A stretch of 63,440 bases of DNA, filler included, from Choristocarpus tenellus KU-1152 (Eukaryota > Protista > Phaeophyceae): the NCBI GenBank assembly GCA_964200185.2. It is 9 parts of 9 records of this genome, joined end to end, with 100 filler letters (N's around TTAATTAATTAA, not from the genome) between each part and the next. Parts side by side here need not be neighbours in the genome. Positions count along the whole stretch, not along the records: positions 15,579 to 20,733 come from CAXNAD020011681.1; 8 more parts are not named here. One strand, written 5' to 3'. This document shows positions 1 to 20,733 of the stretch, one piece after another. The position numbers were made by a program, and so were the translations under genes. Each line of letters starts with the position of its first letter. The first letter of the stretch is position 1. The notes below the pieces were generated by a model. It searched no databases and had not been told where the DNA came from. It saw only the letters and a program-made list of their open reading frames with translations.

Positions 1-1321
1 CGACAAACAAAACGCAACCTTCACCACTACACCCATCAAAACTCTAGGGACGGGTCTGCGTGCACGAACTTCAACCTGCTTCGGCAGTGCAAAGTCTCGA
101 GGATATAAAATCGTTTTCTTCGTGCATGTCGTCGTCCTTTAATACCTCCCACTTGACATGCTTAGACTAAGAGGCCGTTGCGAGCATCGCTCATCCCTCC
201 CTCTATGGAGCAAATGATACCATCACACAAAAACACGAATTCTGGCACCGCTATTTCGAATCCATTGCCCAAATTTTAGCATTGCCAGGTTCAAACCATA
301 AGTATGAATCTGAGCAACATTATCAGTGTTTTCTTCGTAAAAGGTTGGCAACGAAACCTTTTACTCGTACCCAATCGAGGGAGGGCTGACAAATCCTGAA
401 TTCGCCAAGCTTTGCAATTGTTACCCAAATGTCAGTCTAGCAGGCCCCGGATGCATGCCGACATCTAAACCACAATACAAAATATGTATCCAACTTGAGT
501 ATTTCCATCTTGATTCTGAATACACCAAGTCTACTCCCTCTAAGGGGCAGAGTCTTCAACATTACCAACATGGACAAAACTTGGGATGACAGAAATCCGC
601 GCGACATTCTGTCGCGTTCACATATTAACCAATATCTCGTTTTCTTACACTATTTTGCAAAGTTGAGGTTAAGCTTCTCATGCGGATTTTCACAGGAGTG
701 GTTTCTCCCAGTTTCATCTACAACAATCAAATGAAGTTATCAGAGCCCAATCACGTCCTCCTTGGCTTCTATTGAGGCTTGCCTGGGTGGCAGACACCAA
801 ATCTATAGGATGGATCCACAATTCGATCCCTCGGCGGTAAGGAAGATGCAGGGGAGGGTGATACATCGATCATCATATCAAATTTGTGTCCCAGGAAATG
901 CTCAAACATCGCAACGGACCCTAGCATTGTCTTTCCTTGGTCCACCTTCCCATGCTAAATCCCCCTGTAGGAATCCATCATTTGTGAACTTCAAGTCTTG
1001 TGAACAATAACAATTAACTGCTATGGAATCAGTTGTAGAAGGGTGCGTTGCAGAAGATTTCGCGGAGTTCTGGTGCACCGAACAAACAAAGTTTGTTTCA
1101 GGAGACGGAGGAAGGCCGAGGATGTATGTTACGCAACCGAGCCGGTCAGGAGCGGCATCATATGTCATGACAGGGCATGAAATCATCGATACCAATCACT
1201 GTCTGGATGGATTTCCCGCGCCTCCCAGTCGGTGCTTTTGTCGAATATTCCTCTTTCCGTCAACCTTACAACCCCTCGTTTGTGCGCCTCGTCCTCTAAT
1301 CGGAAGATGGGGCAAAATACA

Positions 1322-1662
1322 TGTGCAAATTACCTTGGGAGGTAATGCTATTTATGAGTAGTGAAGATAAGAAGGTGTGAAGCCTCACACGATCCCTTTC
1401 GCTGAACGTGAAAAGAATGGAGGAAATTAGAAGAGTGACCTTTGTGTGGTGTATTCTCATTGCTTGTTTATTATTTATTTGTGCTTCCTATCTAAGTCAA
1501 CGGTTGTGTCAAAGTAGTTGAATGCAGAATAAATACCAACACATAATCCCATACATAATCCGGATGTGATATCTCATTAGTTACATCACATAGATTCAAT
1601 TCAACACCATAATCTCATATGCACAAAATAAGGTACACCTCACTATTGTCCTATTTTGCACA
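1322..1662 (-). mobile_element. Solo LTR of a Copia-type retrotransposon
   Basis: Termini TGTGCAAA...TTTGCACA flanked by a 5-bp direct repeat ATACA (1317-1321 and 1663-1667). A closely similar copy at 51066-51422 abuts a polypurine tract, which gives the minus orientation. Confidence 0.88.
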
Positions 1663-4600
1663 ATACATACCGACAACAAAGATCACGAGCAACCCTCTCT
1701 AATAAGATATCATCGACTGAGCAAAGAGGGGAAGGACCAGCGTATGCGAATAGATCACCGGGAGCCTCGATCTCAAACCCGTCACGTAGCACATTTGGGT
1801 GGAGTGGAGTTGTTTCTGGTTTCAGCACTGGATCCCGATCGCCCCGAGCCATCTCTATCCCACCACCTGTCACTGGATCTAGGACGGGGCTGATACAATC
1901 ACCAGTGAGGAGTGCTTCTACTGGTACGAAACTTGTGGGCGTCTCTTCAACGAATCATACTCCCATGGATATACTGAGGTGGGCACTCGTTTTGGGGGGT
2001 TGTGGGTGTTAGAAGTTGTTGTGCTTCCACCTACCTATCCATGGGTCTTTATGTGAATACTTTCTCTGTCGCTTGGATCATCAATTGGCTGGCCATTTGC
2101 TAAGAAGGATATTATGTGCTCGTAGCAAAGTTCGTGCCAGTGGTGAGACAAAGCTTCGTGGTAAATCTAGGTGAGGCTACTTGACGTAGTGCAACCAATA
2201 GTTTTGGGGCTTGCTTTCCTTTCATTCCTTCACACCTCGAAGTCTTCTGTATTTAATGCACAATACTGCCAAACCTCAGACTTCAATGGCGGCAGTCAAA
2301 TGTCAGTGAACAGCAGACCTCAGGTGGGCTCAGCATCACAAAAAATGGGCAATCTTCGCCAACAATGATCAACCCCAATGTTCTGAGGGTGGTTATCCGG
2401 GTGCGACCACTCCTACCTCACGAAAGGCGCAGCAGGGTTTTGGCCTGGGGTGGTGAGGGAGATTTGGTGGTGATAAATCCGTCAGTGTTTCCCAATAGCC
2501 CAGAGACTGTGAGTATGAGACCTACGTATCCTGAACAAGTCGCATATCAACTGTCACCATTGATTTTACTCCATCCACGTACTCCAGAAGTATCCAATAT
2601 CCGCCACCACGTACTTTCCCAATCCCATACAAATCTTACAACTGCTTTCCTGGTCGATTTCCTCTCTTCACTTTCTTCACCTCTACCGTTTGCTACAGTC
2701 CTTGTGTACTCACCTCTTGGCCCCACATGATGAAGAGTGATAGACTAACGGTGGGGTTTGCTGCTCCCAAGTATGTAACAGTACCTACAAATGGCGGAGG
2801 AAAAGGCATACAACTTTGCAACACACCTCTCCCCCGTTCCTATACACCAAAACCACATACCCTCAAAAACGGTTATCACAACAGCAGCTGCTGTAAGCAA
2901 TGAGTACATGGGAACGTTGGGTTGGCAAAGGTCTTTCGTGTTTGACAGGATTTTTGGCTAGGAGAAGGAATGTGGTCTTGCTCACCAGGCTCGGCATAGG
3001 GGAGAAATGGAGCAGGGGTTGCCCGGGTCCCAAGAAGCCGTTCACACTGAAGTGGGCAAGGGCATGGTCATGGATGTCCTCCAGGTTGTCGTGCTTGCTA
3101 GAAGCATTGTTCCCCTCTTCGTACAATTCTAATAATGGTTTAGGTTTGGAGAGAGAGAGGGTAGAAGGTGATAGGACTGACTTTGAGTGTGACACATCAT
3201 TCGTTTTCCTTTACCACAAGTGCCTCCTTGATGCAGGGTTGCTACTGTACTGAAAATGTGTATTCATGTGGACTTTAAATCTCAAGATATTTTGAAATGG
3301 AGCAATCCCTCGCTTCTTCCGCTCACATCTTCCCAACTGTGCCCAGAGGACTCCATCTTGTTTAAAATTCAAGTCAATGAAAGCACTTGTTCATGATGCA
3401 TCTGCTCTCGACTACGACTTGTGCACCACCGCCCTCCTTTTCCCCTTCCCCGAGGAGTCTAAAAAATCATTTCCTTCTGTAATCCCCATAATCTCAACCA
3501 ACCACTTCAGGGAAAAAATTGTTTGTGCGTGGCACACGGGCATGTAGGTAGTGGCAAGAGCTACTCTATCTTCGGCCGCTGTCCAGTAGAACCAGGAAAG
3601 GCAACTGCAGCAACTTGGCAATGGCGACCCACTGGAGAAAATTGTGGCCTTGTGCCTAGGCTTTGTTCCGACCTGTGTCAACGCATGGAAGGTGCTCAAC
3701 ACGTGCCTGAGCATTCCAAAGGACATGCAAGTGAGTGAAGAGGTTTATAAAATATGGGCAATTATTACGGGGTATATATAATAAGGATGGATAAGGACTT
3801 GGCTTCCTCAAATGTGATCATCTCACTTCTCATTGCATTCACAATACCCACATAAGGATTGTGAGTGGCCTTCTTGGAGCGCAATGCAGTGGGAAAAATT
3901 CAGACAGTGCTCAAGGTATTGGCCAAGATACTGGCCAAGATACACTTTATGAAAATGATTAACTCTGGGAAGTAATGGAGTAGAATATGAAGACTTGTCC
4001 TTTGTCACTCTGCAGTGCTCGTCCTGGAGTGATTGATCAGTGAGGGAGGGGGGGAGGAAGGCTATCGACGATCAAATGATGCCGACACGATCCTTTCAAC
4101 AATAACAAGAGCGGCTCTCAGCAGCAGACCAGGACAACTGTTACGTCAAGACACCCCTATCAGGATTATCGTATTATTATATTTATGAAAATGGAAGTAA
4201 TGGTGTAGAATATGAACATTTGTCCTTTGTCACTCAGCTCAAAGTTTTCCCAACATAATACGAAGTCACACAATTACAATAATAGCCTAGCTATTGCCCC
4301 TCGTCACTTAGCACAAAACAACTAGCACCATTCTGCTGCTATGCTCATATAGGCATGGAAATTATGGTGTCATTTATCGGGGTGTGCGTGGATCAGATCA
4401 GGGACCTCCTTCACCCTGATGCAGACACCACAATATTTCGTGTCAGGGAAAATCGCTGTGCAGGCTCTTTCTTCGTGGAAAACCTTACTCCAATGAAGGC
4501 AAGGGGCATTTCTCGTGGAACATTGTACTCTATGTTCAGTAATTTGTGACTTGAAGAAATTTTCTCCTCTTACTACTCCGGAATATAATATGCCTGTGTG

Positions 4601-5679
4601 GAGGGCAAGAAAAATATTGCCATAGTGCGGATGCAGGGGTAAGGTGTGTTGTGCCAACTCCAAGCAAAAATATGTAGTGTGAAAAGTTGACCGACCACAT
4701 TTGCTCCTTCAAAGTAAAAATATTTGTAACATCTGCCGTAGATATGTTATTTAGAGGAAAGCCTAAGAAATTCAGGGAAAGGATATATTGGGTTTATCAT
4801 CTATGAAAGCAATTCCACCTTCAGATTCGCCGAACATCATCATACTGGAGCTCACGAACACTAGCAATGTGATCACTGTCCAAACTGGTCCTTATATACA
4901 CACCGTAGCAGCCCGAGACCTGGGCTCGCACAAACACTGAAACTAGACCACGGTCCAGACTGGACCTGCCACAACCTGGATGGGGTCATGACTGGATATT
5001 TTACAAACACAAGAAACCGAGGGACGTGGTCTGGAATTGGCATTCAACCAATCCCCGTGTTCCAGGAACCAGACCTTTCAGAAACATGTTACACCAGTTC
5101 AGCTCTGACTGTAATACTGACACATCTGGACGTTTTTGGGACACTCATGCACTACATATCCAGATTGATCATAGTACGAGTTCCTTACGTCGAGACTGGG
5201 TAGAGATAACCGTTGCACGGTCCATAAAAGACACTTCCAAACCTAGTGGTCGAAAACCAGACCTGGAACAAGATTCCTCTAACTTGATGTCAGTCCAAAC
5301 CAGACCTTTCACAAACACGAGATCTGGGTCACGGTCCAGGCCAGGCAGTGTCACAAACCATAGTTGCCCAACACATCAGACCTTCCATAACCTCATCTTT
5401 TGAAAATACAGTGAGGTCTAAGATACATTGGGCTAACAGTACCTTTAGTTATAATATGAGTCAAATTGGAACCTGGTACGTTTTTGTCCAAAGTGAACAT
5501 ACTTCAGGCTCTTTCTTTGTCTATCACAAAAACCCATTATAATATACAATATATAAAACCAAATTGAGGGTTTCGAATGCATTGCATGCTGTTGATATAC
5601 ACATTTTGTTTCCCTCTTCTCAACAACTAGTCCACCTCCACAACATAGTGCAACCCTACTGAGGAGAGAGTCCTTGCAG

Positions 5680-8600
5680 TGGTTGACCAACCGTGGTCAA
5701 GTGTCTACAATTCCATTGAATTCTCGAGACCTGATCATGTAGGATCGAGTGTGGGGCGTTCTACAACACACAAGGAGTCAATAACGATCTCAACAAGTCC
5801 ACTGAAACTGAATCTTGCATATATCCATGAAGATACAAGGAGGACAATATGGTTGAGGGGTCAACTTGTCGTCAGGAAACGACACTCTTGCGAGTGTGTT
5901 CAGGGGAAGCACGAATGAATGGGAACAGTCTGCGGGTGGGTAAGGATTGCGCGTGTTTCATTTACCGTATGAGGTAGATATCCTCGTTTTGGATTCTTTC
6001 ACATTGGAGAGGGTGCGAACGCATTTGAGCGAATGGCGCGTATATGAAGAGAAGTTCCACGAGCAGGAACAATTGCAGTGCCTGAGGGCAACTCGTGTAA
6101 ACATCAAGGATACGGTGAAGTTGGGCACCTTGCGGGCTTTACTGCGAGGTGTGTGCTGATGCACCAGTGGCGAGAAGCTGCTGAGGAATAGGCATCTGGA
6201 ACAGGTGGCGAGGGTCTCGGCAACAAATCGAACCCTAGATATGGGAGAGATTGAAGTCCAATCGAATACCCTAGCCACAATGAGGAACGACGCACGAACT
6301 TCGATCGGGTGCAACTCGTGAAAGAGGCACTAGAGAACTGCATGAGGTCTTCCGTCTCGATGTTGGCAAGGAGGCCGAAAGCTGGCAACATGGGTGGGCC
6401 AAGTGTTGTCTGGGGCGATCCTCGCAGTATTGTCAGCATTATGACCTGTGGAATGCAGGGACCAGGCCCTTGGGGAGGTGAAGTGGTATCCTGACATCAT
6501 GAATGATTTGGATGAACTGTTTGACCTCCCGCTCGGAGAGGCGAAGAAGTCTCACACTTTTGAGCGCGCTATGGAATCCCGGGCTAAGCATCGTACGTTT
6601 GGGGCAGTGTAAGAGCGAGATGTGTCTTTTGACAGGCCCAAATGCGTCAGAGTTGCGCAGGTTGGCAGGGCTGAGGAAAGTGGTTCAACACGGTCCCGTG
6701 AAAGTGAACAAAAGAGGTGGGATTAATGGCCTTCGGCCATAACTGTGGCTAGCAAGGCTACAAGGTGACTGTGTGTGGATGTGGAATGATTTTAATACCT
6801 CGAAGAAAACAACAGTACCACCAGCAGCAATGTACTTTACAAGGAGGAAGCCAAGGCTGGGTACGTTACTGTATCCAGGCCAAGGATATTGTGGTGGTGC
6901 GGGTTAGGGACTGTGTCTTAACAGTGGTTTCATCAACACCAATACGATCTTGAAGTCCTAGATTTTATATGTTTGTACTTCTTAACTACTTTTATTATTT
7001 AGTCATTATGATGCCGCATAGAGGCAGTACCTGTTTGTTCAGTCCTATTTGTATACCCCCACAAAAGCAATAAATTCAATAATTGAAGAGCGAGATCCAG
7101 CACTTTTTGACGACGTTTCCTTTATGGCACCCTCTACGAGCCTCATCATCCACACATCCAGCCTTGTGGATTAGAACTACATATCCCATCGTGGTTAAGC
7201 TTGTGGAGCATTTTGTAAGACCTTCTTTCTGGACAGAAGGGTAGATCAAGCCGCTTGGGTGCAGCCCAAGGCACCCACAGCCATCAAAGGAAGATGATCC
7301 TCTGGTCCCAAGAGTATACAGGGAGGAGAGGCTTTTGGCACCTCCAGGAGAACAGCTTACACTAGAACTGATGGTGCCGAGTGTGGGGAGTTGAATGCAT
7401 TTGTGTCACCCCTAGGAATTCACTATGACAGTGCATGAGAATCTGGACATCCTATAGGTCTCTGTCATGTCAAAAAGGACTATGGTGTGGGGTTCTGGCT
7501 GCAATGGGGGATCCTATATGGATCACAGGACCAGTCATCTCTTGGCCTCAATTGTCCACACAGGGACTGACATGGCTCAGGTATGCACGCCTTTCATATT
7601 TTTTCGCAATAACTATTGTACTCACCTTATTTGTGTTGATACAAACATAAAGAACACAGTGTGACAGTTTCATGTACGCTTAACAGAGTAGTATCGTACA
7701 TAGCAGTATGATAAGTCAGTCATATGTCCGGAAATGGATGACCAAGACAGAAGTCCATCGGATAATTAATAATCAGTGTATGTTCAGCATGTAACCCACC
7801 AGCAGTTCATGGCAATAAGCCTTTTCCTGGACGAATCTATTCAAGTCATCTAAGTGCATCCTGGATGTTAGATCCATGGTCACTGGCATGTCCAAAGGCC
7901 TGGCGAAGAAGCTGATAGTACACCATGGGGGTGTGCATCTTACCTCCCCTTGCCCTCATCATACCTGTACGTCCATCATCATGGCTGACAGCCGTTGGAG
8001 TATCATTCGGGAGGTTAGAGTACCTCTTCACCACTCGCTACACACACCTCACGGACCCATCCAGCTTTGGAACATGACCATGACAGTCCTCCCCGGCACT
8101 GATGGTGTGCTTATTGTGGGAAGAAAAACCCTCCGAGATATCCTGGAGCTGGGTTTTCATCTTTCAGGATGGCCCTTACGGGTGTGGCGGCAGCTGCAGG
8201 GGAAATCATGACCCTCTGGGTCACCTGTCCCTCGATGAAGATGGAATGGTGCGCATTGATGTGGGTTGCCAGCCCGGCTGTGGATCCCTGGTGATTGTCA
8301 GGCTTTGCCGAAATGGTGTGTGGCGCGTATGGGAGAAGCTTGACACCTCGGCATGGCTGCAACAATGCAGTGACTCAAGGTGCATGCGCTTTATCATATA
8401 TGGAGGCAGATGTGACCGATTCTGTGCAGGACTGTTTGAACTGCATGGATGCAAAGGATGGTGGTCATGTGCCCAGATCTTATGGTGAGATGGTACATGT
8501 CAAAGCAACTGGGCAGACTCTTCACGTCATCTACCTTCACGTGGGAGAAAATGAGATATCGGAATGATTGCATGTCCACAACCAATGGGAATTTGAAATA
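5680..8600 (+). mobile_element. Highly degenerate Ty3/Gypsy-like relic inside a kinesin intron
   Basis: Gag-like fragments at 5947-6494, protease-like LDPWS/GMSKGLAKKL...LIVGRKTL at 7860-8150, and integrase-like CLNCMDAK...LHVIYLHVG at 8430-8560. Many stops and frameshifts; boundaries approximate. Confidence 0.55.
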
Positions 8601-8955
8601 ACTGTCATTCTGGAAATGCTTAGAGCAAGGGTTGGGTACGAGGATTTCGTGGACTGACTTAGATTGAAGAGGATGAGAGGTCTGGGGGTGCTGTAGACCC
8701 AGATTTAGGATTTCATAATATGGCATCGGCATTGTCATTGATATACATATTATTTTATTGAGCTTGCCTGGTCTGAGAGCAAGTAGGCTCACTCTCAATG
8801 AGGACATCGAACTGTAGAATCTTGTACTGCAAGCCTACTGAGGGGTGAGTTTGCGACACTTAGACTGGCCCTGGATTTGATTTACCCCTGGTCCGGACTA
8901 GTCCTTTAACAAAGAGTCAAAGTTGATGAGAGGTATACCCAGACTTGCTTTTTTG

Positions 8956-9133
8956 GCTCAAAATATCTGGGGGGGAGGGGGGGTCTACACCAGGGTGCCC
9001 ATTCGGGTCCTAACCCGGAGAAGCGTACTTACACTATCCATTCGACGCATGCAACCAGATAAGCCAAAAATCGCAACATGGAAAAATGGCCCCCGAATGG
9101 ATAGCCGCCCACCCCCCCCAGATCCTTTGAGCC
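8956..9133. mobile_element. Short MITE, second CAAAGTATC-type subfamily
   Basis: Terminal inverted repeats GGCTCAAAATATCTGGGGGG ... CCCCCCAGATCCTTTGAGCC. Related ends occur at 31668-31708, 54621-54653, 57963-58137 and 60768-60810. Confidence 0.7.
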
Positions 9134-10835
9134 TTCAGGATGTTGACAATTGTGTGGAAATTTCGGAGTTTTGTCGAAATGTATGACATTTTCTGAGCTG
9201 TGTAGAAGCTTCGACGAACACCAGAGAAATAAACGCTCTCGAGTCAAACTCACAACTTGATCCATAGAAATATGTGTGAATCCCAAAAGATTGAGAAACA
9301 GACTAAAAAATTAAAACGGGCAAAACCTGGGTATCTCTCGTATTCTTTCGCCCAAACTCCAGTGGTTTTGGATTGGAGCTTCAAAATATCACATAGCAGG
9401 CCACTGTCCGGAATAGACGTCTACAATATTTTACAACTAGAGATTAAATTGCGGCAAACAATAGCCACTTGGGACCAGAACTTCCACCAACATAAGCATA
9501 AGGGCTGCCATCTAGATCAGACTTTTACAACCTCATCTGAAGTCGTGAAGATACACATAAGGAAACGAGGCAATATAGCACTGGGTTCATTAATTGAGTA
9601 GGTATGGTCAAGGAACCGACTGTACATGACGGCTAAGGGTAAACCCCCTGACACCTGGTTGTTAATTTCTATTGTGTGAAAGGTGGAGGACGAAGGAGCT
9701 TCAGAAGCAATATGACGTGGAAGATATCTCTCTATTGCTTGTAGAACGCAAATTGTTCGCTCTAGCAATCCTACTCATATGCCATACCCCATTATGGTGC
9801 TCGTTCTTTAAAATCCAATGCTTTCCTCGTTATTCTAATGCCTCACAATGATAGGTGACTTCATGGCCTCATCTGAATTACCTGATCTCTCGAGGATTCT
9901 ACTCTCTCTCCAAGGCAGGCACCTCCAAGAACAGAATGAGCGGCAACGGCCATGCCATATTTACCCTAGAGGTAGGAAAATCGCCTTGCAGTACCATTGC
10001 AGTACCCTCCAAAGCAGGTTTTAAGGATTTTGTCATCAGATCTCAGTACTTGGTATGAGTCGGCTTGAAGAGGGGCTCTTGTCTTGTGCCTTTGACGTGC
10101 TTGTGAGAGGTGTTTGAAGCACTACTGCAGTAACTTGAACTCCATACTATTAGCAGCATCTGTTTCAGGTAGTTTTGTTGATTCTGTGCGATGCGTTGTA
10201 CCAGTACATCGTATCACAACAAGAAACAAATGTATGTGTAGAAGACTCCTACCTTCTAATTAGAGAGTCTGCACTGTAGAGGGCAATTGGGAAGACGACC
10301 ACGATAATGACTACTCTTGCTTTCAGGGCGGCAAACTATTTTCGCCTTGCTTAACACAATCTAGTCTCTTCAGCCCTTCTAATTACTGTATATGCCCACA
10401 CAAATATTTCCATGTGCAGTGTGGGGGGTCAATGGATAAGGCAAAAGGGTAGTCAACATTTCTAGCTCGTGAGGCATTCTACTAGAAAAGGGGTTCGCCT
10501 CAACAAAGGTTCCATTGTTGGTTCGCAATATGGTCCATCACCCTCTCTCTCTTCATCCAGGTGCACACTAACCGGGGAGTAAGCCGAGTCCAGGTAGTTG
10601 AACTTGCCAGCTCGAAGCGTCAGCTACCAGAGATGGGAGTAAGGCAGAAAGACCCTGCCTATGTGGAAGGTGAAGGATTTGGCAGACCAGGTTAGAGTCA
10701 CCACAAGGACAAGAATCAACTTGAGCAGCAGTTGCGAGAATCAACCAACATCAATAAGACCCTCACCAACTTGGGTGGAATCCTCACTCGTCTCTCAAAA
10801 GGAAAACCTGTCATCGGTCTGCCTTTCTCAAGGTC

Positions 10836-11150
10836 AGACATAGTATTTATCCGTAGATATATTTAGATAGATGTGTCTTGTCGTACCACTAGTTTTGATG
10901 GGTTGTGTGGTAGGTCGATGTGCCAGTGGCCATGGGGAGAGACGTTGATATTGCTTATGTCTTACATCCACCCTGGAGATGGTTTAGCCTTTCCACTGGC
11001 AAGAGCAAAGAGGGATATACCCAGCAGAGATGTTATTTGCACGAAGAGTAGTATCTGTGCACATTGCTGCACATGAAGACATAAACGCTTGATTGTTGCC
11101 CGTGTCCTAGATACACAGACACATGCCCATGAGTGGATACACTACACTTA
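10836..11150. repeat. Dispersed repeat, copy A (internally deleted; carries the empty MITE target site)
   Basis: Collinear with 11584-12320 but lacks ~165 nt and the MITE. Confidence 0.8.
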
Positions 11151-11583
11151 CATATCCACTCTCCCTAAACTTCCCCCTTTCACTCCATTTCTGCCAACAA
11201 CTCTGCTCCCATAGCTTTTGCTTTGAGCTAGTAGGAGTGCATTGCCAAACATTATAGCACTGCCCACTTACGAGAATCCAATGCTATTTCAATATCCCAC
11301 CCTTCTCCTAACACATGGCTGGTCCTCTTCAGTATTGCATGGTCTCTTGTTGAGATCATGGCTTGTTGTATCGTTTGTGATCTAAATCATGTGTTCTACA
11401 GGATAACCTCTCTGGCCGGACACAGATCACTGTGCTGGCGACTGTCAGCCCTTCCGCAGGGGCTCACAAGGACACCCTCCACAGTGATCCGTGTCCGGCC
11501 AGAGAGGTTATCCTGTAGAACACATGATTCAGATCACAAACGATACGACAAAACATTCCGTTTTGACGAGGCTTGTGAATTTG

Positions 11584-12320
11584 AGACATAGCATTTATCC
11601 ATAAATATATTTAGATAGATGTGTCTTGGCGGACTACTAGTTCTGATGGGGTTTCGTCTTTTTGAGATTCATATAATTTCTGCGCTCTGATTCTATCTAC
11701 ATTTGCATAGAATCTGGTTTTAGCTGATTTTTTAAGTTTATCTTCTCCGTGACTCAAGACTCCAACTTCTGCATCATTTGTGTTTGAGCTAATTACATTA
11801 CTAGACGCGGGGGTGTGTGGTAGGTGGTTGTGCCAGTAGCCATGAGGAGAGACGTTGATATTGTTCATGTCGTACATCCACCCTGGAGATTGTTTAGCCT
11901 TTCCACTGGCAAGAGCAAAAAGGGATAACCCAGCAGAGAAGTTCTTTGCACAAAGAGTAGTATCTGTGCACATCGCTGCACATGAAGACATAAACGCTTG
12001 AGTGTTGAGCCAAAGTATCTTTTAGAGGGTAGAGCCGCATCCATTTGAGGGTCAAAATCCAATGTTGCAGTTTTGATGAAATTTTGGCTATCGTGTTTGT
12101 TAGTAAGTATCAATATCCTTGTTCTGGACACACCTTTTTATAACGTACACATTTTATCTATTCCGAAATTTCTCGGAGTAGGAAAATGTCATAAAATACC
12201 CTGANNNNNNNNAAATGGACAAACAGGGCAATACTCGTACCCTCTAAGATACTTTCACTCTGTTGCCCATGTTCTAGATACACAGACACATGCCCATGAG
12301 TGGATATACTACACTCACAT
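11584..12320. repeat. Dispersed repeat, copy B (with MITE insertion)
   Basis: Shares AGACATAG..TTTATCC..ATTTAGATAGATGTGTCTT...CACATGCCCATGAGTGGATA with copy A. Contains a 126-codon minus-strand ORF of unknown nature. Confidence 0.8.
12007..12260. mobile_element. ~260-bp MITE (Sola2-like), TSD TGTT
   Basis: GAGCCAAAGTATC...GATACTTTCACTC. TGTT on both sides (12003-12006, 12261-12264). The paralogous empty site near 11094 has a single TGTT. Confidence 0.9.
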
Positions 12321-12806
12321 TATGCAAAAGAGAACTACTCAAGTAGAGTATTTTGCTTTGTCGGTATGGATATGTTTATTAGCGGAGTGAGCACTGCCCT
12401 CGGTGGTGGGGGGTGCTCTCTCTTATTATCTTAATGTTTATTACATATATCAGCTGACACATTAAAACGTGTCCTGCCGTTACATCTTACTATGTCACTT
12501 TTCCTGTGTAGCTAGTACTATGTCAGAACTCCTCCATCAGTCCATTTATATCATTATCAAGTAATAAGAACTCGATTATCTGAGATTCGAACTCATTACT
12601 TTAAGCAGACGAACACGAATCAACGACACTTGTTCCACTTAGCCAACATTCCTGTTGTCTAGTTGTGTTCACGAAATACGTATAAACCGTACAGACTATC
12701 AGCCTATATTGCACACTTCCCCATGAGCGTGCAGCAAAGTTGCTGGCAAAAGCTCACCCTCGACGCGAAAGCACAGAATGCACAAAACTAGAGTAAGATT
12801 CTTACG

Positions 12807-13061
12807 CAAAGTGTCTTAGAGGGTAGAGCTGCGTCCGTTTGAGGGCCAAAATCCATTGTTGCGATTTTGATGTAATTTTGGATATCGTGTTTGTTTGGAA
12901 GTGTCAATGTCCATGTTTTGGTCACACCTTTTCATAACACATACATTTCACCTACTCCAAAACAATTTGGAGTAGGAAAATGTCAAAATAGCACTCATGG
13001 GAAGCCAAGTACCAAATGGACAAACAGGTTAAAACTTGTACCCTCTAAGATACTTTCACTC
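12807..13061. mobile_element. MITE copy inserted at the end of Copia RNase H (left end truncated)
   Basis: CAAAGTGTCTTAGAGGGTAGAG...CCCTCTAAGATACTTTCACTC; interrupts the frame after QLADI. Confidence 0.88.
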
Positions 13062-15044
13062 AATGTCAGCTAGTTGTTTAGATGCTGGAACATATTCTAC
13101 ATGAAACAGGCCTTGGTCCACATATTCCCTAGTGCACTTCAGCTTCATGTCTACGTGTCTTGTTCTCCCATTGTAACCTTTGATTCTGCTCGCGTGTATA
13201 GCACCACGATTGTCACAGAACCAGGGAGTCTGATCCTGTAATATGCCAATCTCCCCCAGAATGCCTTGAAGGAAAATGCAGTGGCGCATGCCATATGCCA
13301 TTGCCGTCCACTCTGGCTCCAAGCTGGAGAGGGTGACAGCCCCTTGAAGTTTGGAGCGCCAGGCAATCGGCGGCTTGTTGAACAGTAGCAAGTAGCCTGT
13401 GACACTCCTGCATGTTTGGGAGTCTGTGCCCCAGTCAGAATCTCCATAACCCACTAGAAGTTCTTTGCCCCCCTTGTTCATATATTTGTCTCCTCAATTA
13501 TAATGAATGCAGACATCCAATGTCCCTGCAACATAGCGCAAAACGTGCTGTAGTCTGCGTCAGTGTCTCATGCATGGAGATGCTGCTCTACGCCCCAATT
13601 CACGAACACTGTTAGCCAGATCTGGTCGAGTCATGCCTGCTAAGAAAATAAGTTTCCCAAGAATACTGGCATAGGGGTGTATGGTGGGATCTAGCTCCTC
13701 CTCATGATCTTGTTTAGCAGAGAAGTCCATGCCGGGGTCCAGCGGTGTTGATGTCTTTTGTACTTCTGTAGTGCCCATCCCGGCCATGACAATACTTTCC
13801 GCATATAGTTGTTGATCCAAGGTGATTCCATCTTCGTCCACAGTGATGCTCACGCCAATTAGCTTGTCTAGCGTACCTAAGTCCCGCCCCTCATACTTTT
13901 CCAGCAGTGATGCCCTCATCCTTTGTATTTCTGTGAAGTCCCCAGTGGTGAATGTGTCGTCCACATAGGTCGTGAGAATGGCAATGCGTCCGTCTTCACT
14001 CTTCTTGAAGCAGAGGCACTTGTCATGTTGGCTGCTTGTCCATCCCTCTGATATAATGGTACTGCGTAGTTTATGGTACCATTCCATTACTGACTGCTTC
14101 AGCCCATAAATTGCCTTCTTGGCCTTAACTGTGCAGCCATCAGGAAACTCCAACCAGATGTCCTCCTGCAGATCCGCGTTGAGGTAGGCCTGTGTAAAGT
14201 CCAGGGCGTCTATGCTCCAACCTCTGTATGCTGCAACTGATATAATGCATCGTAGTGTGTCATATCCCACCACCAGGCTGAAGGTTTCAAAGAAGTCCTC
14301 TCCTGCATTTTGGGTGAACCCACGGGCCACTAGTCTTGCCTTTTATCGCTCCACTGACCCGTCTGCTGAGCGCTTGATCTTGAAAACAAATCGTGTCTTG
14401 ATTGCCTTCCTCCCTTTGGGCAGGACCTTATCACTAAAAGTCCCCTTTTGCCATAACCCTGACATTTCCTTCTCCATTGCCTCTTGCCATTGCTCTCCAT
14501 CTGGCCCTCTCAAGGTCGCTTTGGTTGTAGATGGCTCGTCTGGACCTGCTGTTACTTCCCCCATGAGACCCATAAAGCAGTACACTTCTTCGTTGTTCTG
14601 CTGCATGAGGGTTGACGCGAAATGGTTAATGGCTGTTTCTGCTTCTTCCTGATCACATAGTTTAGATGTGTAGGCTACCCGCTGGTGTTGCTCCAGCCTG
14701 GCAGATCTCCAAAGTCCAGAGTGTGGGGTCAGGCGTTTGGCTGCCATCTGTGCAGCCCTATCCATGCGCTGGCGTTGTCCCATCCTGGTAGAAATTTCTT
14801 AACTTTGGGGGGATGCTGAGCGCTTTGTATCTTGAGTCCTACGCCCAATGTTTTGACGCTCACCTCCAGTTTCGCTCCCTGTTGTGCAAGCCTCTTCATC
14901 TCTCATATCCATGTTCATGTCGTCATGAAACTCTGGCTCCCCCACTAACTCCAGCAGTTTGTCTTCAGGCTGGAAAGACACTTGTGCTGAGGTCACCAGC
15001 TTACCCTCCTGTGGGATCCATATGTGCCAGCATAATGATTCTCT

Positions 15045-15302
15045 GAGTGAAAGTATCTTAGAGGGTACGAGTATTGCCCTGTTTGTCCATTTGGGGCTTG
15101 GCTTCCCTCAGGGTATTTTATGACATTTTCCTACTCCGAGAAATTTCGGAATAGATAAAATGTGTACGTTAAAGAAGGTGCGTCCAGAACAAGGATATTG
15201 ATACTTCCTAACAAACAAGATAGCCAAAATTTCATCAAAACTGCAACATTGGATTTTGGCCCTCAAATGGGCGCGGCTCTACCCTCTAAGATACTTTGGC
15301 TC
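15045..15302. mobile_element. MITE copy inserted in Copia pol
   Basis: GAGTGAAAGTATCTTAGAGGGTA...TACCCTCTAAGATACTTTGGCTC. Removing it plus one TCT restores GHDRESLCWHIWIP. Confidence 0.92.
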
Positions 15303-15478
15303 TCTGTCATGTCCAACAATGATCCCCCGTTTTGCATATGGGTGGAACTTAGCATTGACGCCGCGCTGTTGCTTGGTGCGGTGTACAAAACACTCTGTCC
15401 CAAATACTCGAAGCCGCTTGTAATTAAAGGGTGTGTTGGTCAGGCGCTCATATGGAGTCTCGCCTCCCAAGTATTCGT

Positions 15479-15578
15479 NNNNNNNNNNNNNNNNNNNNNN
15501 NNNNNNNNNNNNNNNNNNNNNNTTAATTAATTAANNNNNNNNNNNNNNNNNNNNNNNNNNNNNNNNNNNNNNNNNNNN
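15479..15578. other. Artificial contig linker
   Basis: N44-TTAATTAATTAA-N44, a six-frame stop linker. Confidence 0.98.
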
Positions 15579-15689
15579 CGCAAAAAACCCATCCTCATAG
15601 TCCCGCGCCTTCCTCAATTTTGAGATTCCCCTGTTCTATTCCTGCACCCCAGGGTGGGGAGGAGGTAGGGAAGCACCCCACGAATCTAA

Positions 15690-15960
15690 GAAACCAATGG
15701 CACGTCTAGACAGACCACCTGCGTTGTTACCGATAATATTTGACGTAGGTGGGATTTGACCGCCCCATTCCTGCCATAACCTCCAGTTCCTCTCCCCCCT
15801 ACCACATATTTTGCCAGCTTATCCAGGAAACGTTCCGCTTGCTTGCTGAGGCGCCCAAAACTTTCCACCGCGAAAGTGTTGAGGCTATAATAACTACGAG
15901 GATCAAAAGAGCCCTTGTAGTGAGTGCGCTTTCGCGTCTCAGTTGTAGCAACAGTTACAC
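15690..15960 (-). mobile_element. Non-LTR retrotransposon C-terminal fragment (RLE/CRE-like)
   Basis: RKRTHYKGSFD...FAVESFGRLSKQAERFLDKLA...LRQILSV resembles the C-terminal tail of restriction-like-endonuclease non-LTR elements. Confidence 0.65.
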
Positions 15961-16654
15961 CATTTCTGATTAATGAATGGAAGATGGGGGGCGGGGGGTG
16001 GGCTGCACTTCTTTATTATTATCATTATTTTTATTGTTTATTTTCTTACGCCTCTTCTATTTCATATATGTTGTGTCCATTGCTTTCTGTTTTCTACAAA
16101 GTGCAATCTATAATATCTTTCACATTTTCCACAACTGTTACTTTTTTATTACAAGTTGTGATATGATTGGTTTTGCTTTTTCCCTGAAACATCTACAAAA
16201 TGTTAGAGGGCATAACAATAAAATATATATTTATTTTCACAAATTTCATCTCACTATATTCTACTATATAATTACATACACGTCATACGTCGTTGAGTTA
16301 CAAATAGATTGAGAGTAATATTGTACATAGATCACATCAAAACATCCCATTTTAAGGCGACATATTCAGTTTGGAATGGGGGTAGTGACGCCTTAACATG
16401 GGACCGGTTTATGTTTTTTTGTTTACACCTCTTCAGTTTTTGAACTAGACTTCTCCCCCCCCTGGTCCCTCCCCCCCAATCAATTTGAAAATTGAGATAT
16501 GACTTCTATTGTATCACCAACAAGGGCAGACAACAACAAGATAGATTAGTGTTGTGAGTTTCGTGAGTACCCTTGCCACTAGCCTTGTCGGTAACTTTGG
16601 CACTCTCCCATCTGGAGTACCCTAGGATTCGGTGCGTTGTAATCGCAACTAGGA

Positions 16655-18028
16655 ATGTCGAACAGTGGTGGTTTGACAGATTTTTGGAGTGAGCCCTGGA
16701 CAGCGTCAACTTGGAGCCTTTGGTCCAGCCAAGGAGCTGCATCTGCTGGTCTGAGGGCCCTGAACTGGAGAAAAGGTGCAGAAATTGACCCGTGGTCTAA
16801 CAACTGGGGAAGCACGCTTGGACCTGGAGCACCCTTGCGAGAGACTCTCAAGGGAAATGGAGGGCAACCTTTTGGGCGGGAATGCGAGACCGCGCCCAGG
16901 ACAATGGGGAAGCGCACAATTGAGCTCCTCCCCACAGACGAACAGCGTCAGACGCTCCAAAAGGTGCGGGAGTGTACGTTAGAATGTGCTGTTCGATGGA
17001 CCTTTCTTTTGAACTCTCTCAGCTAATTTTTGCTCTCACATTCCCCCAACTTGATTCTCCAGTGGTTTGGTGTTGTACGCTGGACCCATAACCGGGCCGT
17101 GGACGCTCTCCGCCGCGATCCCTATGCGAGTAAGGGAAGCCTTTGGGCTGCAGTTGCCGCGGCGGAATCGGATCATGCGTGGGTCTCTGCTGTTCCCAGA
17201 GCTGTCCGCGATGATACTGTCCGAGAACTTGTGGAGCAATTCAATGCCTTGCCAAGACGGGGAGGAGTTGAAGACGGGCTCAAGTACCGAACTAGAAAGG
17301 ACCGTCTAGAACGGGTGGTTGTACGAGCATCGGGGTAAGTGACGGTCAGGAATTTTGTGTTAGTAAGTAGAGAGGTCTGAGAATGTTTCAGGTTTTATTG
17401 TGCCTCCAAGCCAGGATGTACAACATACGGGGAGGAGAAGGTTTAACCAACAGTATTCGGTAGGCAATCTTCGCTTAATCCTAAGTGCTCTTCATGATAT
17501 AGGTCTTGGATCTGGGACAGCAACTTTTAAACTGAGGTACTACTGCTAACAAAATGATTTTACACAGCAGTGCCAACAATGCGGCGATATATTGCTCTCG
17601 CTCAGTATGGGTGAGGAGTGAAGTTCTGTGTTGCAGCGGTGCTCTTAGAATCTTAAGTGGCAATGTAAAGCTCTACCTCATACAGACCAACAATAAAGTG
17701 CTATATTGGGCCTGTTTTGTTGCTCAGGGATTAGGCAGCACATGTGTTAAGATGCCCTTTGTGGCGCTGATATTGTGCCGTTTTCTTTTCTGAATCCCTA
17801 CTTTCGCAACAAGTACTACTACAACACCTTTTTTCCTGCCTCTCCACTTTTGTCAGGTACTACGGGGGTATTCCTTATCCTGACTACTTTGGTCGAACAC
17901 CATTGGCTGCTTCGGAAATTCTCCCAGAGCGACTGTCTGGAGACGGTGTCCTAGTCCGTAGCTGTGAGCGCTTCTTCCTGTGCATTCCTACCTTCGAGAA
18001 GGAAAACAAATGGTCGGCGACAGCTTGA
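16655..18028 (+). CDS. Spliced, RuvC-less Fanzor2/TnpB-derived protein, 250 aa; exons 16655-16963, 17063-17334, 17857-18028
   Basis: Splicing at AAG|GTGCGG...CTCCAG|TGG (phase 0) and GG|GTAAGT...TGTCAG|G (phase 2) gives one open frame: ...KRTIELLPTDEQRQTLQK|WFGVVRWTHNRAV... (OrfB_IS605 HTH/WED-REC start), WVSAVPRAVRDDTVRELVEQF, LKYRTRKD, YPDYFGRTPLAASEILPERLSGDGVLVRSCERFFLCIP, then TGA at 18026-18028. Confidence 0.88.
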
Positions 18029-20682
18029 ATGTACAATTGTTCAGATAGCAGGGAGTGATTTAGGGGATGCCTGATGAAGCTATCACTCGACTTGATAGTG
18101 GACACTGCCCTCCTGGCTGGCACTCTTCCCTTTTCCCCCTCCCACTACAGTCCATATATGTTTGTTGTTGCTCTTCTCCTGTTTTTTCGTATATTTCTCT
18201 CTGGTTTGTTCCTTCTTGGTCACATTGTTTCAAATATTATTTCAAGCTTTCGTCCTCTATCAGAGAGGTGAAGCGTCTTGTGCATGCGCTTGCTGAGCAT
18301 TCCCCACCTTGAGTGTGCATACAGGTGGGGTAGGGGAACAGGGGGGGGTGAAGGGAAGGCAAGAGAAAATACTGGAGAGCATAGCTGCACAATTAAGTCC
18401 TGGTGTCTTATATGACATAAAAGTGAGGCAGGGAGATAGATGGAGAAAGCCTTGCAGTGTGTAGGGATGTCAGTGGCAGGCCTTATCCAATATGACCCTG
18501 CAATCTGCCAAAGTGAATATACTGCTTGTGAGGAAGGATTTGTTTGACAAACATAGGATCGTTCACGACCTTTTACTTAGCTCTGGTCGGTGTTTATTTG
18601 CTGTAGTACAGTAACATTTTCCTTGTGTGCGCATCTCGTGCTGGGACCCTTTTTTTCTGCATGTGTCTTATGTTATTTATTGTATAGGCAAGCGGGGGAT
18701 GCATATTTTGGAGGTTAACAGCGGGGTTATTTTGATTGATGCATAGGGTTAGGGTTCGCGTCTTGCGAAGTATAGAGAATTAGTCCTGGTGTAGAATCAG
18801 GACTAATTTCCTGTAGACACATTCTCTGCTTCTTCTACCCACTGTACTGATACCTACCAGGAAGGTTGTGGTTGGTCAGAGTGTTGTATGGATCGAACGG
18901 TAATTGTAAGTGATAGTGTGACAGGAGAAGATTGGATAGAATATTGTTAGTTGTAGTATCAAGGGGTGGAGTGGTCAATGTATGAAGTGATGGATAGATA
19001 GGACCATGGACAGGCGCACCCATTTCTGCGTGATTTTTTTTGTTGTTGCTTGGAAAGCATTGCACAACAAACTTTGTAACTATTTCAACATCATGGATAG
19101 TGAGCCGTTGTGTTTGCCAGATAGTAGCATAGGCACATATGATGCTAATCTGATCTACAGAGCATGTTGAATGGTGCATCCACTGCATTCATACCACAAA
19201 AGTTGGGGCTATGGAGAAGAGGGTTGTAGGTGGGTTTTTGTGTATTCCACAACTGCATCAAGTCTGTCAATTCGACCTACCTTTCAGTGCTTTGAGATTT
19301 AAATTCATTCAAGTGCAGCATATTTCAAGAAATGAAAAGATCGAGGAGACAGTACAGTGAAGGGAAATTATTGCTCTTCCCTCTCACCATGACACCGTCT
19401 CCTGGTCTCTCTTCCTTCACGCTCTTGGAGTAGAGTAGCAGTGAGCAAGGTGGGTAGCTCGGGGTATTCTGATGGTGACAAACAGGTCCTGAAGTCCTTA
19501 TGTGGGTGGCAGTGCGCACTTTTGATGTTGCTTGTCAGGTGAAGATAGCTAACGTATTTGGCAGGTGGCAGCAGTGTATTGAGGTATCAGAGGGTTATTG
19601 ACATTGTGATGCAATGGTCACACACAGGGCAGTACATTGCTAGAGAGGCCTCTCTACTGTAGACCACTGTTGCATTAATGATGTGCTCACACTTGAGTAT
19701 ATACTGGAATGCAGTACTGACTCGAGCAGAGCATTTTCATAAGTGGTTGTTCTTCCATTGAGAGTGTGTGATTGGTGCTGCTTATATTTCTGTAAAACCT
19801 TTGAAAGCAAAGTGGTATCTAGTATTTACATGCCAAGTGACCTGTGCCTAGAACAGTTGTCGTTCAGCAGCAGCCCCTATTCCCAAAATCGATTTTAAGG
19901 GGTGCACTGCTGAAGGAAAGACAAAACCAGTATCATTGGCTGATACACCCACCCAAGGGTGTATTCCACCACTGTAGCCAAATGAAAGACAAATGAAAAT
20001 AGGAAATGCAAGTCAACTCTCTAGGACATTGCGGATCCCCTTGAACATTCTGGCAAAGCCAATCAACACATGGCCACCTTCACCCCACCGCCGTCCTATT
20101 TCATTCTATTTTGCATCCTTATCTTTTTGTCCCCTCAAATTTGGGGGCAGTAGGAATCAGAGCCATCATCGTTATTCCCTCGTTCCTGATACAATCTCTT
20201 ACATCAATCAACTTTGTCACACATCCATTTTGTTAGTTTTGCTCGAATCATCCCTTTAAACCCATCTGCTCTATATGACACAATGCACAGTGGCTCAATG
20301 GGGTGCGAGTGATGAGTATCCTCGCTGAATCTGCTTGAACTCATCCTGATGTGTGCCGATCCATGTTTTGTTGTACGGGAATGGTAGATGAAGCAAGCCA
20401 ACTTGTACATGCTGTGTCAGTTGCTGCAGCTTTCATACCTTATGTTGAGGGCAAGAAAAGTGATTGACATTGGGATCTGTAAATTTGTTGTGTGAAGATG
20501 GCTTAGAAATGTGGAATATTTGAGGGGAATGCTGTATGCACAGAGCAGCAGTAACCATAGGGTCTCTCTTTATAGTGTACCTCTTGCAGTGCAGGAGGAA
20601 CCAACTATTGAGTACACTTTGCCACGTTGAGATGAATGTTTGGCATTATTCTTCGTAGAGGTTAGGTTATATATACTGCATG

Positions 20683-20733
20683 GAGGGTACGAGTTTTGCC
20701 CTGTTTGTCCATTTGGGGCTTGGCTTCCCATGG
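20683..20733. mobile_element. MITE fragment at contig end
   Basis: GAGGGTACGAGTTTTGCCCTGTTTGTCCATTTGGGGCTTGGCTTCCC matches the 15045 and 50609 copies. Confidence 0.85.

Follow-up and report, generated by a model that had tools for sequence, protein, structure and literature searches.

A single-copy gene of Choristocarpus tenellus, with orthologs in other brown algae, that probably descends from the N-terminal half of a nuclease of the Fanzor2/TnpB type

Gene structure, splicing and genomic setting

Positions 15579-20733 of the window, the 63,440-nt stretch of joined DNA analysed here, have exactly the sequence of the 5,155-nt Choristocarpus tenellus contig CAXNAD020011681.1 (GCA_964200185.2; locus label L007). 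The public annotation of this contig comprises one gene only, at window positions 16655-18028, with a product of 250 aa (P0038) that bears the public name "unnamed protein product"; the gene model is thus already public but unnamed. Slices of P0038 correspond residue for residue to the translations of exon 1, exon 2, the split-codon G and exon 3, and this protein and its orthologs were used as stand-ins for the spliced product.

The gene lies on the plus strand. The coding part of exon 1 (16655-16963; 103 codons, P0038 residues 1-103) contains a conserved N-terminal motif, L-T-D-F-W-x-E-P-W..T-W, then a linker that is disordered, and lastly the first part of a TnpB-like module (RTIELLPTDEQRQTLQK), and its 3' end reads ...LLPTDEQRQTLQK (...QRQTLQK). 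Intron 1 (16964-17062; 99 nt, phase 0, GTGCGG...CTCCAG with GT..AG borders) includes one in-frame stop only (TAA, 17024-17026), as well as a GCTAAT at about 17023. Exon 2 (17063-17334; residues 104-193) opens with WFGVVRWTHNRAV (WFGVVRW) and encodes the REC helices and the KYRTRKDR strand. Intron 2 (17335-17856; 522 nt, phase 2), which runs from a GTAAGT donor through a pyrimidine tract to a CAG acceptor, splits the codon of Gly194 as GG/G. The coding part of exon 3 (17857-18028; residues 194-250, TGA at 18026-18028) encodes the final WED strands (..VLVRSCERFFLCIPTFEKE..) and terminates where RuvC-I would begin. Both introns had been predicted from the DNA, the first with its in-frame TAA and its split of a K/WFG motif and the second with its donor and pyrimidine tract, and the sequence and P0038 agree on each of these features.

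Splicing was evaluated with three public runs of one study (X1, X2 and X3) in which the locus is present. X1 provides a single 4,515-nt contig over 16196-20710 at a depth of 18.5 with both introns present, X3 is likewise unspliced at the locus, and both look like DNA runs. Coverage in X2 is confined to about 16465-20053, with depth absent over 16267-16438, and this run behaves like RNA-seq as judged by its coverage pattern alone. X2 record 11 (774 nt, depth 141) lacks exactly intron 1, with 497 and 277 nt flanking the joint, which was placed at 16961/17061 and, with the cut moved by +2, at 16963/17063. Record 13 (1,947 nt, depth 98) passes directly from the last bases of exon 2 to 17857, with a short side of 26 nt, the joint being placed at 17333/17856 and, with the cut moved by +1, at 17334/17857. 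Record 12 (533 nt, depth 12) retains intron 2, corresponding to ~12% retention of this intron. The Choristocarpus gene therefore has three exons, and both introns are removed by splicing at the two junctions that the original prediction had named, each of them carried by a spliced X2 contig.

The 5' UTR (16465-16654) extends from the left end of the RNA-like contig, where X2 record 11 begins. Downstream, record 13 is unbroken over 17856-19776 and includes no further splice joint after the stop codon, so that the stop is genuine and is followed by a 3' UTR of ~1.75 kb (18029-19776) with no RuvC or TNB remnant. An inverted repeat with arms of 18 nt and a loop of 9 nt, capable of forming a hairpin, is located within this long 3' UTR at 18771-18815.

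The exons are richer in GC and CpG than their surroundings, as had been noted from the sequence, with a GC content of 0.52-0.58 and an observed/expected CpG ratio of 0.54-1.03 compared to 0.43-0.46 and 0.32-0.59, respectively, in introns and UTRs. Non-coding DNA at window 18029-20566 has a CpG ratio of 0.32-0.45 versus 0.87-1.03 in exons 2-3, and this depletion could reflect methylation of CpG in an early-branching lineage, since DNMT1 is retained in Discosporangium (Phaeoexplorer preprint).

The locus is found on a unique contig with a flat depth of 18.5 and no variant copies, in agreement with the single copy that was expected. Neither terminal inverted repeats nor direct repeats bounding the gene were found in this piece, and none of its ORFs matched a transposase or recombinase family. 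Both contig ends (15579-16266 and 20567-20733) consist of very high-copy repeats, with a summed word depth of 1e4-6e5 versus 18.5 in the unique middle, so the predicted lack of transposon context holds for a Fanzor-type element but not for the contig ends. These terminal repeats are probably the cause of the assembly break, and they do not accompany the gene in other species. The right repeat has a sharp start at 20683/4 with hundreds of loose ends, and a few short-sided joints (15635 to 20683 and 16156 to 20684) suggest that the two flanks adjoin in other copies of the repeat. On the minus strand, 15689-15943 includes the remnant of an ORF, for which Pfam gave no match.

Relationship to Fanzor2 and TnpB

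The Pfam family HTH_OrfB_IS605 (PF12323) matches P0038 at residues 89-118, across the exon 1/2 junction, with 33.2 bits (cut-off 21), and it also scores above cut-off in P0005, P0004, P0039 and P0019. When single exons were compared with Pfam and NCBIfam, the only match was a sub-threshold one to PF12323 in the last 20 aa of exon 1. A profile built on exon 2 (A1) reaches Fanzor2-like proteins of 387-617 aa at E values of 2e-5 to 6e-4, most of which carry PF12323 together with PF01385 and PF07282. Among these, P0012 matches mimivirus Fanzor2 L79 with an E value of 3e-26 and has no match to Fanzor1. The closest full-length relatives found include a protein from a giant-virus MAG. In an alignment with full-length relatives (A2), the algal proteins share the motifs R-x-I-x-L-x-P-T-x-x-Q, L-x-K-W-F-G-x-x-R-W-T-[YH]-N, V-P-x-x-I-R-D, K-[YF]-R-[ST]-x-K-D and Y-[YF]-L-C-I-P.

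Sequence searches of the PDB with the exon-2 profile and with P0038 gave no significant TnpB or Fanzor match, and these structures were found by fold comparison alone. In the AlphaFold (AF2) model of P0038, the block means of pLDDT lie at about 72-94 for residues 80-242; residues 1-74 fall below 50 and are disordered. The best Foldseek match of this model is ApmFz2 (9b0l; E 3.8e-7), to which VIA-align assigned a Z of 16.5 over residues 132-316 with 160 residues aligned at 3.0 A. Model residues 84-250 superimpose on residues 4-182 of ISDra2 TnpB with a Z of 15.2-15.7 (8exa, Z 15.7), and the chain 8ex9_A, which holds WED and REC only, gave a Z of 15.6 and a target-normalised Foldseek TM of 0.70. 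The Fanzor1 protein SpuFz reached a Z of 7.8. The model thus shows approximately 165 residues predicted to fold like the WED and REC lobes of Fanzor2 and TnpB, and by the same fold comparison the nearest solved structure to P0038 is a Fanzor2 and not a Fanzor1, in line with the affinity suggested earlier. Descent of the gene from the Fanzor/TnpB family is supported.

This origin, indicated by PF12323 and by the similarity to ApmFz2, agrees with the original prediction of a Fanzor-derived gene, which had overlooked that only the WED-REC half remains. The algal proteins track their full-length relatives from 'RxIxLxPTxxQ' to '..YYLCIP' in alignment A2 and, in every ortholog, terminate about 10-20 residues short of the RuvC-I motif 'LDPGVRTF'. 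P0038 itself ends ~10 residues before the position of D191, which we take to be the first RuvC catalytic aspartate of ISDra2 TnpB. The split RuvC domain with its D-E-D triad (PF01385) had no match in P0038, and the zinc-finger/TNB domain (PF07282) is missing in P0038 and in all orthologs. Searches by tblastn and with an HMM of the Fanzor2 C-terminal half detected no RuvC or TNB remnants in the window or in L001, L003, L008 and L009. Lacking both the RuvC and the zinc-finger domain, the protein cannot be an RNA-guided nuclease; it is the WED-REC half only, Fanzor2-derived and not a Fanzor nuclease. The nuclease half appears to have been lost before the brown-algal radiation. No Rfam family matched in the piece, and for an omega-RNA region the contig-level data contain neither an Rfam match nor DNA conservation outside the exons relative to L003; the ancestral omega-RNA site was lost together with the C-terminal half.

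The N-terminal region was compared separately. The algal proteins share an acidic-aromatic motif, L-x-D-F-W-x-E-P-W..T-W (alignment A3), for which Pfam, hhalign and HMM comparisons gave no match to anything known. A full-length 550-aa Fanzor2-like ORF in the giant-virus MAG GVMAG-M-3300013132-66 (L004, 5470-7122) has in common with the metagenomic proteins P0009, P0010, P0012 and P0016 an N-terminal motif 'PFW...LWSP...STWF', and from these sequences this region looks like a conserved N-terminal extension of that Fanzor2 subgroup. Homology between the algal DFWxEPW..TW and the viral 'PFW..LW..SWF', which MAFFT aligned, was considered and rejected as unproven, with an hhalign P of 0.017 and a probability of 2.7%, and with HMM scores that were not significant against shuffled controls in 5 of 6 algal sequences.

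Conservation and selection in brown algae

Orthologs were collected by a word search with exon 2, an exhaustive profile search and then the use of the Discosporangium ortholog as query. An intact ORF is present in a minimum of eight brown-algal species spanning three or more orders (Choristocarpus, Discosporangium mesarthrocarpum, Ectocarpus fasciculatus, Ectocarpus sp. 13, Hapterophycus, Nemacystus, Undaria and Laminaria), and several unannotated Logan contigs likewise carry an ortholog. The Discosporangium mesarthrocarpum protein (P0005) has 249 aa and the Ectocarpus orthologs about 400 aa; genes outside Discosporangiales have one additional intron and a long low-complexity linker. In the Ectocarpales orthologs P0039, P0041 and P0019 (loci L009 and L008), an expanded linker of ~200 residues, in which 10-11 histidines occur in a row, separates the N-terminal motif from the TnpB-like module. 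In Nemacystus the annotated protein has a divergent N-terminus that resembles a signal peptide, and in Ectocarpus sp. 13 the model contains an aberrant stretch ahead of its last exon; both are probably annotation errors.

Intron positions and phases are identical wherever they were compared, which covers five loci of four or more species: the Choristocarpus gene, L003 (Discosporangium), Ectocarpus fasciculatus and two Laminariales-like loci. The conserved sites are K/WFG (phase 0) and the Gly codon before [FY]xxG[IV]PYP (phase 2), as seen in L003, L001 and L009; in L002, intron 1 and the intron-2 donor are present before the contig ends. Intron 1 of the Discosporangium gene measures 123 nt. 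The stop codon occupies the same position within a few residues in all orthologs, with an in-frame TAG there in L001.

Between the gene in the window and that of Discosporangium, amino acid identity is 65-81% per exon, with a pN of 0.158 and a pS of 0.747 (saturated), and exon 2 of L001 and L002 gave an omega of 0.07. In blastn, the alignment of the window with L003 is confined to the three exons, and no conserved non-coding DNA, such as might represent a guide RNA, was found relative to L003, L001 or L002. The LKYRTRKDRLE basic strand and the WFGVVRW[TI]HNRAVDALR helix are near-invariant across the algal family. These substitution patterns clearly indicate strong purifying selection on the gene, as anticipated by the original prediction of host domestication.

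Conservation of intron positions in relatives was thus confirmed, while that of flanking genes was not. The Choristocarpus contig carries no second gene for a comparison of synteny, and no shared neighbours were seen between the two loci with annotated neighbours, Discosporangium (an EsV-1-7-domain gene and ParcG) and Ectocarpus (a PAPS reductase and an acyl-carrier-type gene). The neighbours of the orthologs are ordinary host-type genes. The EsV-1-7 cysteine-rich-repeat gene, of a family named for a phaeovirus gene, is located upstream in Discosporangium (L003, 5292-8312) and is not adjacent in Ectocarpus.

Putative role and alternative explanations

Taken together, we consider it highly probable that this is a single-copy Choristocarpus tenellus host gene of a brown-algal family, which goes back to the N-terminal half of an RNA-guided nuclease of the Fanzor2/TnpB type; its product is proposed to act as a nucleic-acid-binding regulator. 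The locus combines the traits of a domesticated (exapted) host gene, with a single copy, clade-wide orthologs, purifying selection, expression and loss of mobile-element hallmarks. In Fanzor2, the WED-REC groove grips the TAM duplex and also touches the heteroduplex of guide and target (PMC11832414). The retained groove would serve as a nucleic-acid-binding module, most likely for dsDNA, and a partner would be brought in by the N-terminal motif, which sits on a flexible, disordered linker, with the outcome of a transcription-factor-like or chromatin-adaptor-like regulator and not a mobile-element enzyme. A nuclease-free nucleic-acid-binding regulator is our best guess for the putative function, and the proposal of nucleic-acid binding follows from the role of the groove in Fanzor2 together with the near-invariance of the basic strand and the WFG helix across the family. 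The isolated WED-REC half may differ in behaviour from the intact protein, because much of the omega-RNA scaffold in Fanzor2 and TnpB is held by RuvC. A more specific scenario, in which the target-recognition half of a giant-virus Fanzor2 was fixed at about the time brown algae arose and now acts as a sequence-specific, possibly RNA-assisted, regulator or as an anti-Fanzor or antiviral decoy, is offered tentatively and is rather doubtful.

In prokaryotes, nucleases of the TnpB family have taken on new roles more than once, as in Cas12 and in the TldR and dCas12f transcription regulators; in TldRs the RuvC fold is still present in inactive form, with a guide RNA next to the gene. Fanzors in eukaryotes are to our knowledge known so far as mobile-element or viral nucleases. 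In the literature searched on Fanzor and OrfB_IS605 proteins in brown algae, on domestication, on exaptation and on nuclease-dead forms, we found no description of a RuvC-less, host-fixed eukaryotic Fanzor derivative. The gene would show that eukaryotic hosts also domesticate the TnpB/Fanzor family and that the recognition half is selectable by itself. If it acts as a regulator or decoy, it would represent a eukaryotic counterpart of the bacterial TldR-type exaptations and the first from a RuvC-less fragment. It is a testable candidate, for which Ectocarpus offers both an ortholog and genetic tools, and it provides a natural minimal WED-REC scaffold of interest for protein engineering.

With Fanzor2 (mimivirus L79, 9b0l) the algal gene shares the WED and REC lobes and the common motifs, but it lacks RuvC, the zinc-finger/TNB domain, a detectable omega-RNA region and an IS607-type or other transposon context, has two spliceosomal introns kept across brown algae, and carries an N-terminal region for which no relationship to the Fanzor2 NTD could be demonstrated. 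Bacterial TnpB (ISDra2; 8exa, 8h1j, 8ex9) resembles it in HTH_OrfB_IS605 and in the superposition described above, whereas the algal gene is eukaryotic, nuclear and intron-bearing and ends before the RuvC aspartate. TldR proteins and nuclease-dead TnpB and Cas12f homologs, which are RNA-guided transcription regulators in bacteria, have likewise left the transposon, lost cleavage and been kept by the host (Wiegand et al., bioRxiv 10.1101/2023.11.30.569447; PMC13472631); in contrast to TldR, the algal protein lacks the entire RuvC/TNB half, has no visible guide RNA locus and belongs to a eukaryotic host. The Fanzor1 genes of phaeovirus EsV-1 and of endogenous virus in Ectocarpus are full-length, single-copy and virus-borne, within IS4-type elements with TIRs (Bao & Jurka 2013, PMC3627910). 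They belong to the same superfamily and the same host group, brown algae, but the algal protein is structurally much nearer to Fanzor2 and TnpB. Because the known brown-algal and phaeovirus Fanzors (PMC3627910, PMC13236599) are full-length Fanzor1 proteins in IS4-type elements, they are of a different lineage from the gene studied here.

Two explanations would deny the gene its status as a functional RuvC-less protein. In the first, the gene would encode a full-length Fanzor, with its exons for RuvC and the zinc finger farther downstream and overlooked by annotation; introns are known in eukaryotic Fanzor genes, and the contig reaches just 2.7 kb beyond the stop. The RNA-like contig, however, continues 1.75 kb past the stop without a joint, the tblastn and C-terminal-half HMM searches were empty in the window and in ~5-10 kb downstream in L003, L008 and L009, and eight annotated orthologs share the end point, which in L001 is an in-frame TAG; this explanation is largely refuted and its probability is close to nil. 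Hardly more probable is a decaying transposon or viral fragment, functionless and transcribed and spliced by chance. Its truncation, its position between high-copy repeats and an annotation that goes no further than "unnamed protein product" would fit such a fragment, but intact ORFs in at least eight species and three orders, shared intron and stop positions where checked, a pN far below pS and DNA conservation limited to exons all stand against decay.

The main alternative to the regulator role is that of a decoy or dominant-negative protein, in which the WED-REC fragment competes with invading viral or transposon Fanzors for TAM sites or guide RNAs, by analogy with repressors that are truncated transposases. 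In its favour are the chronic colonisation of brown algae by phaeoviruses with Fanzor genes (PMC3627910, PMC13236599), the presence of a giant-virus MAG protein among the closest full-length relatives, and the retention of the half that reads the TAM (PMC11832414). Against this, the known phaeovirus Fanzors are Fanzor1 proteins in IS4-type elements (PMC3627910), while the algal protein resembles Fanzor2 and TnpB and is matched by SpuFz only at the low Z reported above. An arms race also predicts fast evolution, and omega here is about 0.05-0.1. Furthermore, the Phaeoexplorer preprint reports no viral regions for two genomes, both of Discosporangiales, which are taken to be those of Choristocarpus and Discosporangium, and the gene has been kept in these genomes; their lack of viral regions also argues against a gene of an endogenous virus. 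We regard the decoy role as unlikely and favour the nucleic-acid-binding regulator. Choristocarpus is placed under Sphacelariales in the NCBI taxonomy copy.
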